Shown: positions 29,267 to 54,494, counted from the first letter of the stretch. The stretch: DNA of 60,593 nt from Macrostomum lignano (GCA_002269645.1 NIVC01004102.1:1-60593), one strand, 5' to 3'. The notes: a model not told the origin generated them from the letters alone. Translations and numbers: made by a program.

Positions 29267-30154
29267 TCAATTTCCTACTTTCATCAACTGCATGTAGTTG
29301 AGGCCATTTGCCCCCAGCCTGATCCTGAACTGGTTCTGGCCGTGCAGGCCCCTCTGTCGATTCAGCGACACGCTGACCCGGCGGTCTCCTGGCGACAGGC
29401 GCAGGAAGCCCACAGCCAAGCAGGTTAGCGGCGACTCGGAGTTCATCGCTCTGCCAGCAATGGCGACTCTGCCGTCGAGGTTGACTCGGCACTCAAGATT
29501 GACCGGAGAGCTGCCGTTGTGGTTCTGAGCCGTCAGCTGGAGCACTGCCTGGTACAGTCCGGGGCTCAGGATCCGTAGCCCGAACGAGCTGTCATTTAGC
29601 AGGACAAAATTGGGTGCTGCAGGCCCACCGTCTGAGGTCCATGGTCCCACCAAGACATTGTTGGTGCCCTCTGGAATCGGAGGCGAAAGGTAAATGTCGT
29701 TGGGGCTTGCACTCGGTTGACTGCGAATATTCAGCAAGCTCACCTCTGCTAGTGATCTTCCCTGCTCCCCAGCAGAGAGTTCCGCTGTAGTTTGATGAGC
29801 ACAGGGGCAGACCCTTGTGCGTCAGTCGGAGCAGAATTGACTGAAAAAGCGGACGGGGGAGCCTCTGCAGCCAAGGACTTCTCGAAGAGAAAGAATACTC
29901 ACAAAAATACTCACATTGGCCGAGTCATGACCGCTGCTGGCTTCAGCTGTGGCCGCTTGAGTGGCTCCTCCAGCGATGGCCAGAGCGCCCAGGACGCAGG
30001 CGGCCACGGCGACCGCCGCTAGCAGCAGCCGCGGATGACGGCGCGTCTCAGCGGCCGGTTTTGTACCGGCGGCGGGCACCGCGGACGGCTCCGACGGCTG
30101 CTGACGCTCAGCGTGTCCAGCCTCCAGAAGAAGCGATTGAGCCTGGTGGGACAT
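29267..30154 (-). CDS. TNF-superfamily ligand-like paralog A, type II membrane, 246 aa, 3 exons (30154-29915, 29840-29744, 29670-29267)
   Basis: TM segment LLLAAVAVAACVLGALAIA. Introns of 74 and 73 nt are GT-AG, phases 0 and 1. TNF-homology motifs GPW, LRILSPGLYQAVLQL, LEC...LTCLAVGFLRLSPGD, NYMQLMKV. Confidence 0.85.
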
Positions 30155-30257
30155 TGTTGCTTTGAAGAGAAGATGTTTATTTCGCTGTCTTTGCAAGTAT
30201 GCTTCTGCTTTGCAAGCAATTTTTGGTTGAATTTTTTTTAGTCGAAGCTGTCGCCTC

Positions 30258-30264
30258 TTTTATA
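30258..30264 (-). promoter_or_regulatory. TATA box (TATAAAA) of paralog A
   Basis: About 105 nt upstream of the ATG; the other paralogs have comparable TATA positions. Confidence 0.6.
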
Positions 30265-31103
30265 GAGTTTGGCGAACTGCTTTGCTTCCCTCAACAGCCA
30301 ACGGATGCCGAGGGGACGTTCCATTGTGTGCCAAATCTTGTTGCAACAAAAATAGAATCCAGCTCGAGCTAAACTGGGAAGTCTGTGCCGGGCCAGGCTG
30401 CAGAAGAATAGCCAGGCTCGAGGCAAGTTCGCGAGTCCAATTGTGCGCCGATGGGTAAATTTAGCAGCTGTCTGTTGGCGAGACTCTGCACAGCGCAGCC
30501 TGCGGACAGCCACTGATTCTATTTTTAGAAACAGTCGTTATTATCTTTAGCAGTTGGCAGTTTTCGAATTTCCTGTTAGTTCTTTTCAACACTTTTAGAA
30601 ATATGATTGCGCCACATCTGACGGAATGAAGGCGAAGGTTTCTGGCATCGATGGACTTGAAAATAGTTTACTTTAGAAAGAAATTAACTTGCGAATATCG
30701 GATAGTTGCTGATAATATATTGATATGTTGCTATCGTATATCGTCTATTAATAGCTCGTGTTTAATATCGTCTACATAGATCATTCTTTGATACTTTGTA
30801 TGCTCTTGATAGGCTGGTCTATACTCAGCAACATCGAAAAGTCGCCATCACAGAAGATTCCATTGATGGTGGCCACTTTTGAGAGTGCAGGTAAAGTCTC
30901 TCAGTGTTTGCGAGTGACGCAACTCAGCTACGCTGTGGCAGACTTGAGTTGAGGAATGAAGTGGGAATGGGGAAGCGGTGTGCGAGGGTTGGACGGATTA
31001 AAGCAACCCTCAGTTTTTTCTCGTATCTTTTATTTCAGAATAGTCCAAGATAAATTGCTCACTGGCGCAGAGAGTGCATGACGACTTTTCCAATATTGCT
31101 GAG

Positions 31104-51727: not shown

Positions 51728-52293
51728 TACATGACATGCAGTAGAAACAGTAATCTAAGGACAGCCTCTGGAGGTAGCATTTGGCTGCTTTAACTTCCTG
51801 TAGCCAAATTGAAGCATTTCCAAAAATAGTATGCGTTTGTGTTAAATTTAGTCATAGCAGGCCATTCCGGATTCTAAAACCGCAGACGAACGCTGCACTT
51901 ATTCCAGTCATAACCTTGTTTTAAAACACCTTGTGACCACCCCAGTCAAGTTTAAAAGATAATAAAGCACTGATAAAACTACCTTTCAATGACTGCAATA
52001 AGGTTGTGTGCTTTCGATGAGTTTGGTAATTCACAAACATGACTCAGAAGTTCGCTCTCTGGCAAATGCTTATCACCTGGCTGCTTCAGTCCTATTTTCT
52101 CAACATCCTTGTTTGTTTATCAGTCCCTTGTGTTGTAGAAAAGCACGCACAATGTGGCAAATGCATTTTGTATGCACAGGACTCAGTGTACACTGCCGAG
52201 TGCTTGTGCGCAGCTGCACAGTACACTGGAGAGTAGGGAGAGAGAGGGAGAGAGAGAGAGGGCAGAGAAAGAGAAGCCCCATCTGCCAAACAG

Positions 52294-52300
52294 TATAAAA
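52294..52300 (+). promoter_or_regulatory. TATA box (TATAAAA) of paralog F
   Basis: Followed by a candidate 5' UTR intron 52340-52392 (gtaagg ... pyrimidine tract ... ttgcag). Confidence 0.6.
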
Positions 52301-52596
52301 GGGAAGTTCCCTGGCTAACAGGGATTTCCAATTCTCCCAGTAAGGCAACGCGACTGTTTTTTTCGTTTTTCGTTTCCTATTTAATCTTGCAGTCTTCACC
52401 TGAGGCCCCTACGATCTTTGTCAGACAGAATCTTCCACAACCAAAGCCAAAACAATGAACGGGCCCTACGAGAACCTGATGCAAACATGCACGAGAACCC
52501 GGCCTGCGAATACTCCATAGAATCCTCGATTCCACAGGACTGTCGCAAAGTTCGCCAAGTGACGGCGACGGCGGCGGGTGCGGGCAGCGATGCCGA

Positions 52597-54494
52597 ATGG
52601 CGATTCTGCTGGTTTTGCTGCTCGGCTCCCTGGCTTCGCTTGGGATCTGCGGCTTTGTGCACTTCTCCATGCTGCACCGCTGCGTAAGCACTGGCTGTCG
52701 GGTTGGGTTAGGGTAGATAGATAGATAGATAGATAGATAGATAGATAGATAGATAGATAGATAGATAGATAGATAGATAGATAGATAGATAGATAGATAG
52801 ATAGATAGATAGATAGATAGATAGATAGATAGATAGATAGATAGATAGATAGATAGATAGATAGATAGATAGATAGATAGATAGATAGATAGATAGATAG
52901 ATAGATAGATAGATAGATAGATAGATAGATAGATAGATAGATAGATAGATAGATAGATAGATAGATAGATAGATAGATAGATAGATAGATAGATAGATAG
53001 ATAGATAGATAGATAGATAGATAGATAGATAGATAGATAGATAGATAGATAGATAGATAGATAGATAGATAGATAGATAGATAGATAGATAGATAGATAG
53101 ATAGATAGATAGATAGATAGATAGATAGATAGATAGATGGATAGATAGATAGATAGATATGGATATGTTTAATATGGACCCATAATTGGCAATTCTAGAA
53201 ATACGCAACCTTTGTGCTGGACTCGAACTCACTGAGACCGTGCGGCCAACCCGCTTGAGTCCGACTCCGTGCTCGGAGAACAGCTCCAACTCGGCCATAT
53301 CCGCAACCTACCTGAGCTCCAGTGTCTGTTAGTCAGAGAATATCTTTCGAATATGTCTAAATTTAGTATATGGTGTTCCAATGATAGACTACATTATTTT
53401 ACTGAAGTACTACTTTCACTTTTTCGCTTACTGTTAGTAGGGTTGTTTAGAGACTTACAATTAAAATAATTTACAAGATGTTTAATAAAAAAACAAATTC
53501 TATTTTGCAGACAACAACGCGCTGGGGCCTTGGAGGCTGGCTGAGGTCTACGGCGCCAACGACGGCGGTCGTTGCGGCTTCCAGTTTGAGAGGCTGGGCA
53601 CGCACCTGATTGTGCAGCAGCCCGGACTGTACCAGCTGACTGCTCAGGTGAGACAGCAGCCAGTGCTTATGCCTTTTGATATAAAAGTTATATAATCACT
53701 TTTCTATCAGTCAATAAATAAGACCGTCAACTTATCAAACTTCATTTACTCGTTCAATCAATCAATCAATTAATCAATCAATCAATCAATCAATCAATCG
53801 ATCGATCAATCACTCGATCAATCAATCAATCAATCAATCAATCAATCAATCAATCAATCAATCAATCAATCGATCGATCAATCAATCAATCGATCAATCA
53901 ATCAATCAATCAATCAATCAATCGATCAATCAATCAATCAATCAATCAATCAATCAATCAATCAATCAATCAATCAATCAATTAATCGATCAATCAATCA
54001 ATCAATCAATCAATCAATCAATCAATCAATCAATTAATCAATCAATTAATTAATTAATCAATTAATCAATCAACTAGTCAATCAATTCAATCAGTCAATC
54101 AATCAATCAATTAATCAATCAATCAATCAATCAATCAATCAATCAATCAATCAATCAATCAATCAATCAATCGATCAATCAATCAATCAATCAATCAATC
54201 AATCAATCAATCAATCAATCAATCAATTCTTTAATTAACTAACAAAACGACCCACCACACCGACAGGTGACCTTCGCAGACGGCCACTCATCTCACCTGG
54301 AGTGGCAGGTGGGCCACACCGAGTGGATCGCGGTGCAGCGCGGTCGCGACCCGGAGTCGGGGCCGTCGCAGGCCCGCCTGGAGGCGGTGCGCAGACTCGG
54401 CGCTGGTGAAAAGCTGTCGCTGCACTTGGACAGAGGCGAGCGATGGCTGGCCACTGACGCTTCGGCCACCTTCGTCACTCTCGTGCGGTTGTGA
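52597..54494 (+). CDS. TNF-superfamily ligand-like paralog F, 4 exons (52597-52683, 53199-53321, 53511-53647, 54267-54494), with an apparent 1-bp frameshift; N-terminus uncertain
   Basis: Hydrophobic anchor MAILLVLLLGSLASLGICGFV. Exon 2 YATFVLD matches D LAKFVLD. Exon 3 LGPW...LIVQQPGLYQLTAQ. Exon 4 LGAGEKLSL...ATFVTLVRL. Intron phases 0, 1, 0. Exon 2 is 123 nt but needs 124; one extra C at the CCC (53250-53252) removes the stop. Confidence 0.7.
52713..53163. repeat. (GATA)n microsatellite in intron 1 of paralog F
   Basis: Directly visible. Confidence 0.98.
53752..54227. repeat. (ATCA)n microsatellite in intron 3 of paralog F
   Basis: Directly visible. Confidence 0.97.

Follow-up and report, generated by a model that had tools for sequence, protein, structure and literature searches.

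A tandem array of probable, highly diverged TNF superfamily ligand genes in Macrostomum lignano

Six related loci in one bounded cluster

A 60,593-nucleotide (nt) stretch of Macrostomum lignano DNA (GCA_002269645.1, NIVC01004102.1:1-60593; hereafter the window, meaning the whole stretch analyzed) very probably carries a bounded array of six tandemly arranged paralogs encoding very diverged tumor necrosis factor (TNF) superfamily (TNFSF) ligands. Judged by sequence and predicted fold, the encoded proteins appear to be nearest to the EDA/Eiger group. The genes, here called A to F, all lie inside positions 29267-54494 (25 kb), with A to E encoded on the minus strand and F on the plus strand. When all six reading frames of the window were translated and scanned with a profile of the TNF homology domain (THD), exactly six THD loci emerged and none besides, which bears out the six-gene tandem cluster proposed in an earlier sequence-only reading. 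On the minus strand the matches cover 29270-29821, 33054-33692 and 37393-37851 (genes A, B and C) as well as 41843-42637 and 46170-46991 (D and E). The match to gene F on the plus strand is split into 53489-53692 and 54243-54491. The list of open reading frames (ORFs) between 29000 and 55000 likewise includes six with GPW, GLY and AGD motifs in common, five on the minus strand and one on the plus strand. On its upstream side the cluster is bounded by a DUF3715 (TASOR-like) gene together with further ORFs, and on its downstream side by a glycosyltransferase gene.

The window is eukaryotic in character, containing numerous minisatellites as well as GT-AG introns, and its CpG observed/expected ratio is 0.71. 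The GC content at third codon positions (GC3) in the coding sequences is 0.69-0.78 compared to an overall GC content of 46%. From A to E, successive start codons are 3795, 4868, 3817 and 4285 bp apart, matching the spacing of about 3.8-4.9 kb noted earlier. Reciprocal searches connect the loci with each other. A hidden Markov model (HMM) trained on A to C had its best non-training matches in E (2e-4) and D (0.022), and an HMM trained on D and E had its best non-training matches in C (5e-7) and B (0.019). All six proteins can be aligned over the full THD, at amino-acid identities between paralogs of 18-47%, or 22-47% within the intact five (A to E). Pairwise BLASTP yields 33-47% identity within A, B and C and 34% between D and E. 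BLASTP matches across the subfamilies are weaker (e.g., 6e-8 between C and E in a tiny database) and those of F are the weakest. The low identity among copies suggests that the duplications are old. The array comprises two subfamilies. The A/B/C genes have two introns whose positions and phases are conserved, and the D/E genes have none. F is an orphan with an extra intron.

Gene models and promoter elements

Genes A to E are intact and the 5' structure of gene F is uncertain. The expectation of six full genes is solid for A to E and uncertain for F, which has an ambiguous 5' end. Predicted sizes fall within the range of 191-264 aa given beforehand, with 210-264 aa for A to E and 193 aa, near the lower limit of 191, for one of the F models. 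Gene A (29267-30154, minus strand, 246 aa) is assembled from exons at 29915-30154 (N-terminal tail and transmembrane segment), 29744-29840 (strand A and a Cys loop) and 29267-29670 (the remaining THD). This GT-AG model has no internal stops and its THD has a profile match of 9.4e-42. Gene B (33051-33949, minus strand, 248 aa) has exons at 33710-33949, 33527-33623 and 33051-33460, and gene C (37390-38817, minus strand, 210 aa) has exons at 38725-38817, 38328-38445 and 37390-37811. Every junction in A, B and C is canonical GT-AG, with intron phases of 0 then 1 in all three genes. Genes A and B also have equal lengths of exon 1 (240 nt) and exon 2 (97 nt). The introns measure 66-86 nt in A and B and are longer in C.

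Genes D (41840-42634, minus strand, 264 aa) and E (46167-46919, minus strand, 250 aa) are intronless, and each is an uninterrupted ORF. With two introns common to A, B and C (matching in position and phase), a third within the THD of F and none in D and E, the pattern suggests that the D/E ancestor lost its introns. Such a loss could have occurred, for example, by retro-copying or by gene conversion with a cDNA, with tandem duplication afterwards. An exact look-up among recorded gene products returned neither D nor E. Intron 2 of gene C contains a tRNA-like sequence (38143-38212, minus strand) scoring 33.3 bits against the Rfam tRNA model (threshold 29) without an ARAGORN call. This element is probably a tRNA-derived short interspersed nuclear element or a tRNA pseudogene, and the RNA scans detected nothing beyond it.

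Gene F (52590-54494, plus strand) is the most divergent copy. Its two THD exons (53511-53647 and 54267-54494) are intact and divided by an extra phase-0 intron carrying (TCAA)n. The homolog of exon 2 ends at 53321, and the first exon extends from 52590 or 52597 to 52683. Enumerating all GT/GC-AG combinations for the 5' part produced two acceptable models, both imperfect. In the model starting at ATG 52597 (178 aa), the N-terminus is convincingly hydrophobic but the portion of exon 2 encoding strand A is skipped. The model starting at ATG 52590 (193 aa) keeps strand A, with a weakly hydrophobic N-terminus. A reading of the second exon as 'NTQPLCWTRTH*' was rejected as being in the wrong frame, and the homologous frame gives GLELTETVRPTRLSPTPCSENSS. 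Gene F may be a decaying copy or pseudogene, or may have an unusual 5' structure.

Each minus-strand gene has its own TATA-like box, as the sequence-only reading had suggested, with gene B carrying only a variant. All boxes are on the minus strand, and distances are counted 5' of the ATG. The sequence TATAAA(A/T) is found at -110 nt in gene A (TATAAAAG, 30257-30264), and as TATAAATA at -116 nt in gene C (38926-38933), -68 nt in gene D (42695-42702) and -77 nt in gene E (46989-46996). Gene B has TATAAG at -109 nt (TATAAGAA, 34051-34058). The chance expectation is 0.21 TATAWA per 400 nt.

Profile searches and predicted structures

For gene B as a single query, phmmer gave no match in the PDB, and a word-indexed homolog search with its THD found nothing. 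Profiles built from the paralogs were more sensitive. The six-sequence profile, searched against 177,635 PDB sequences, had 58 matches at E<=1, and all of these were TNFSF members. An APRIL/BAFF single-chain fusion ranked first (1.5e-11), and the best single-domain matches were Eiger of Spodoptera frugiperda (9.5e-5) and EDA (7e-4). Further matches included 4-1BBL, RANKL, CD40L, BAFF and TNF. The five-sequence profile likewise matched almost solely TNF ligands, with at least 60 listed at E<=10. No C1q-family chains, i.e., C1q, adiponectin, CTRPs, cerebellins or the NC1 domains of collagen VIII/X, were among the listed PDB profile matches. As weak evidence, the hhalign alignment to human TNF spans 76 columns (C to F strands), and that to adiponectin only 24.

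Structures were predicted with AlphaFold2 from shallow alignments for monomers of the gene B THD and the full-length gene E protein, and A, C, D and F were placed by alignment to these models. The gene B THD is predicted as a jelly roll with a predicted local distance difference test (pLDDT) score of 79. The gene E model (pLDDT 72, with many blocks >90) has a transmembrane helix (residues 36-58), followed by a disordered stalk and then a jelly roll (residues 92-248). The strand order in both models is as expected for a ten-strand THD, and the jelly-roll fold anticipated for a TNF-like domain is thus predicted in each. In Foldseek searches against the PDB, TNFSF members made up all 50 of the top 50 matches of gene B, led by EDA-A1, GITRL and 4-1BBL at ~1e-5. 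For gene E, they made up 49 of the top 50, with EDA-A1 first (E 2.3e-8) and a phage portal-tail chain at rank 49 as the exception. The gene E model matches EDA-A1 with a target-normalized TM-score of 0.73-0.77 at a root-mean-square deviation of 3.2-3.4 A, and Eiger (6i50) at 1.7e-7. C1q-family structures were absent from the Foldseek top 50 of B and of E. Together with the type II layout of A, B, D and E described below, the TNFSF-only profile matches at E<=1 and the jelly-roll models uphold the TNF-ligand-like reading of the cluster.

Protein architecture

The TNF hallmarks quoted from the sequence were recovered in the alignment. These are GPW or G.LGP, G(L/V)(Y/F)xVxxQ, (A/P)G(D/E)x(L/I) and a C-terminal F/Y strand, and gene B does contain VGVFRLEAGDRI as it had been read. 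Conserved residues include G(L/V)(Y/F) on the C-strand and hydrophobic positions on the F- and H-strands, which form the interface in known ligands. The conservation of such interface-type residues is consistent with trimers. A small, disulfide-type Cys loop (PxC-x8-10-C) is located between strand A and the GPW motif. Strand A precedes the loop according to the gene E model, and in A to C this region corresponds to exon 2 (VSLRIAY...PPC...SLC). The THD of A to E contains a further conserved Cys pair, with a 23-residue spacing in A, B and C.

An N-terminal hydrophobic segment had been proposed for all six proteins. The segment is found in A to E, where the best 19-aa Kyte-Doolittle window reaches 2.0-2.9 (2.4-2.9 in A, B, D and E), and is uncertain in F. 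In A, B, D and E, an N-terminal tail of 35-65 residues with a basic end leads into a strongly hydrophobic segment, and the hydrophobic window follows 2-5 K/R residues. The transmembrane segment spans residues 43-61 in A, directly after ETRRHPR, and residues 66-84 in D. All N-glycosylation sequons are C-terminal to the transmembrane segment. These four proteins look like type II membrane proteins, with the N-terminus inside, a Cys-loop stalk and a C-terminal THD. The ectodomain of gene C is the same as in A, B, D and E. Neither a furin site (RxK/RR) nor collagen (G-X-Y) repeats were found in the proteins.

The long cytoplasmic tail of gene D (~65 aa) features a YTDL motif. The tyrosine motifs in residues 1-65 are NEVYSSS and NQVYTDL, the latter being a YxxL. 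The similar NGPYENL is located 5' of the transmembrane-like ORF of F in another reading frame. The motifs in D and the NGPYENL of F could be reverse-signaling or sorting motifs.

Alternative explanations

Several results weigh against an assignment to the TNFSF proper. The gathering score of the Pfam TNF model (PF00229) is 23 bits, and the best scores all fall below this cut-off, with 20.5 bits for spliced F (E 4.7e-4), 15.6 bits for C (E 0.016 for the THD exon as a single sequence) and 12.1 bits for B. Spliced A, spliced B, D and E had zero matches to Pfam TNF. An exhaustive HMMER profile search over 1.84 billion representative proteins gave 38 matches below 1e-3, and the best (5e-11) was a multi-domain protein. 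No single-domain match was better than ~1e-5 in this search, and neither a close homolog nor an ortholog was recovered. Among the matches inspected, distant matches fell into multi-domain C1q/TNF/BclA_C proteins (with clusters including Oscarella lobularis and Hydractinia), hymenopteran Eiger-like proteins and unnamed metagenome proteins. Given this mixture of the C1q, TNF and BclA_C superfamily, sequence alone supports the C1q/TNF clan more firmly than the TNFSF proper. At the level of individual genes, the splice junctions of A to C are predictions, and assembling gene F costs either strand A or a convincing transmembrane segment. Gene F also lacks the intra-THD Cys pair of A to E. The hydrophobic segment of gene C begins at residue 4. 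As only three residues precede it, gene C may have a signal anchor or a signal peptide, and the protein is possibly secreted. Poly(A) signals 3' of the stop codons do not exceed the chance frequency, and no gene for a cysteine-rich-domain receptor was noticed in the window.

In the Pfam comparison of TNF and C1q recommended for the proteins, no member reached the TNF cut-off, and B alone gave a weak C1q match. The same searches bear out the description of the genes as hidden and highly diverged, since no member reaches the Pfam gathering score and nothing among the 1.84 billion proteins is closer than 5e-11. The PF00229 model is reported to be poorly sensitive for invertebrate members, and a transmembrane segment N-terminal to the fold has been used as a membership filter (bioRxiv 10.1101/2024.07.27.603686).

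The mixed distant matches raise the question of whether the proteins are instead C1q-domain-containing (C1qDC) pattern-recognition proteins or belong to another branch of the C1q/TNF clan. In that case, the jelly roll might function as the head of a lectin or opsonin, comparable to the large C1qDC expansions of bivalves. We consider this unlikely. As a single sequence, gene B is equally weak against Pfam TNF (E 0.19) and C1q (E 0.27; PF00386, 11.9 bits), and this was the only PF00386 match among the single-sequence Pfam scans. C1q and BclA_C domains are as frequent as TNF among the distant matches in the library, and the N-termini of C and one F model resemble signal peptides. Invertebrate C1qDC expansions are also well documented (PMC10672478). 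However, a C1q identity is difficult to reconcile with the listed PDB profile matches and the two Foldseek top 50, which are all free of C1q-family chains. C1q-domain proteins (PF00386) belong to the TNF clan and have the jelly-roll superfamily in common with the cluster, whereas the cluster proteins appear to be membrane-anchored type II proteins without a collagen stalk. Tails of 35-65 residues followed by an internal, positive-inside transmembrane segment in A, B, D and E correspond to TNFSF architecture rather than to secreted C1qDC proteins. The C-strand GLYxVxxQ and the F-strand GVFRLxAGDR also fit TNF ligands.

The array could also be largely dead, consisting of unexpressed relics of an old TNFSF expansion with ORFs surviving by chance, and hidden through pseudogenization. 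Gene F would fit such a scenario with its ambiguous or damaged 5' end and its missing THD Cys pair. The lack of a recorded annotated product for D and E and the chance frequency of poly(A) signals point in the same direction. However, five copies at 22-47% identity all retain complete ORFs of 210-264 aa, together with canonical splice sites and conserved phases, the transmembrane segment, both Cys pairs, structural core residues, a strong GC3 bias and a TATA box positioned as expected. Neutral decay across such divergence would have erased these features, making a dead array very improbable. That the resemblance arises by chance or from composition, in GC-rich ORFs of repeat-rich DNA, is effectively refuted. 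The minisatellites throughout the window do yield long spurious ORFs, but no tandem array overlaps any of the six loci, except for those in the introns of F, and composition alone cannot produce reciprocal HMM recovery, a TNFSF-restricted PDB list or confident jelly rolls. The Foldseek matches of E also speak against it.

Comparison with known TNF ligands and implications

Diverged TNFSF ligands remain the preferred reading of the cluster, and the closest known counterparts are Eiger (6i50, S. frugiperda) and EDA-A1/A2 (1rj7, 1rj8, 7x9g), which are likewise type II proteins with a C-terminal THD. Hymenopteran Eiger-like proteins have a (V/I)GPW motif before the domain, as do the cluster proteins. 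Identity to Eiger and EDA is only ~16-22% in structure-based alignments. Unlike EDA, the cluster proteins have neither a collagen-like stalk nor a furin site, and their PxC-x8-10-C loop was not found in the matched ligands.

By analogy with all characterized TNFSF members, the proteins would form homotrimers, and possibly heterotrimers, at the cell surface. Such ligands would bind receptors with cysteine-rich domains (TNFR, Wengen or Grindelwald type) to form 3:3 complexes, and TRAF-type adaptors might relay the signal to JNK, NF-kB or cell-death pathways. Because the proteins have no furin site and no collagen repeat, they might act mainly in membrane-bound form or after non-furin shedding. 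The roles in immunity, regeneration or allorecognition put forward in the sequence-only reading are speculative.

The TNFSF is restricted to metazoans and has often expanded by tandem duplication (PMC12843592). Such genes hence imply a metazoan source, and the CpG ratio of 0.71, the short introns of A and B (66-86 nt) and the absence of close relatives point to an invertebrate rather than a vertebrate. Crassostrea gigas has 23 members, Branchiostoma floridae at least 24 and tunicates up to 14, mostly from tandem duplication (PMC12843592). A mollusc with 27 members and cnidarians with up to 9 have also been described (bioRxiv 10.1101/2024.07.27.603686). The sequence-only reading set the cluster of six paralogs against the single Eiger gene of Drosophila. 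This framing is misleading and overstated the novelty, because tandem TNFSF expansions are known in oysters, amphioxus and tunicates. As in the published expansions, the cluster shows a tandem multi-gene repertoire, rapid divergence and unrelated flanking genes (PMC12843592; bioRxiv 10.1101/2024.07.27.603686), and its members are poorly detected by the Pfam model (bioRxiv 10.1101/2024.07.27.603686). Unlike in those expansions, intron-containing and intronless copies are mixed, and no orthology to the published genes emerged from the exhaustive profile search. The novelty is modest and consists of a very diverged clade that lacks annotation, a stalk with a Cys loop and the mix of intron-containing and intronless genes in one array.

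Beyond the array itself, we can only tentatively suggest a lineage-restricted TNFSF clade, from an animal lineage barely represented in current protein collections and lacking detectable orthologs there, with a PxC...C stalk module of its own. In such a clade, D and E were perhaps retro-duplicated within the array, and the copies might have undergone immune-type diversification with mixed heterotrimers. TNF-family ligand genes can evade both ORF-based gene calling and Pfam thresholds, and can be recovered by combining paralog profiles with structure prediction. The number of TNFSF genes may therefore be underestimated in animal lineages with poor sampling. Five intact, old and compact paralogs, with conserved intron phases and two intronless members, could inform how TNFSF repertoires grow. 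The overall picture is unchanged, with tandem TNFSF expansions outside vertebrates already established.

Flanking genes and repeats

Upstream of the cluster, a long series of plus-strand ORFs (~5219-16606) includes a DUF3715 domain (TASOR-type pseudo-PARP) at 13227-13898 (Pfam E 7e-8) along with Ser/Thr-rich and RS-rich regions. The series is probably one large TASOR-like gene, and its DUF3715 ORF had no homolog in a word-indexed search. Between this gene and the cluster, a high-complexity ORF of 244 aa (22348-23082, minus strand) without a Pfam match is probably a real, uncharacterized gene. Just upstream of the cluster, a 108-aa ORF (27486-27812, plus strand) has a signal-peptide-like start (MPIDRRIALICSLLLLMAAAAFAAP), a Gln/Glu-rich body and no Pfam match, and may encode a small secreted protein. 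Downstream of the cluster, a glycosyltransferase with a DXD sugar-binding region is encoded on the minus strand by at least two exons (58028-58240 and 59541-60422; Pfam Gly_transf_sug E 3.9e-21). No protein in a 5.8-billion-cluster collection shares three 5-residue words with this GT32-domain protein, which points to a poorly sampled lineage.

Differing mini- and microsatellite arrays largely occupy the spacers between the TNF-like genes, except for the spacer between B and C. The arrays cover 31104-32334, 39218-40081, 40561-41590, 42867-44034, 44469-45788, 47306-47653 and 48157-51727, with units of 33, 4, 22, 12, 21, 31 and ~20 nt. One of these, 3.5 kb long and A-rich, separates E from F. Different gene units have no spacer repeat in common. 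Two separate arrays outside the cluster (18102-18552 and 24655-25787) have a 42-nt unit in common, as circular permutations of AGAATGGATTGCTAATCTAGCCAACATCACTGATGAAGGAAT. These two arrays look like a dispersed minisatellite family, possibly borne by a mobile element.

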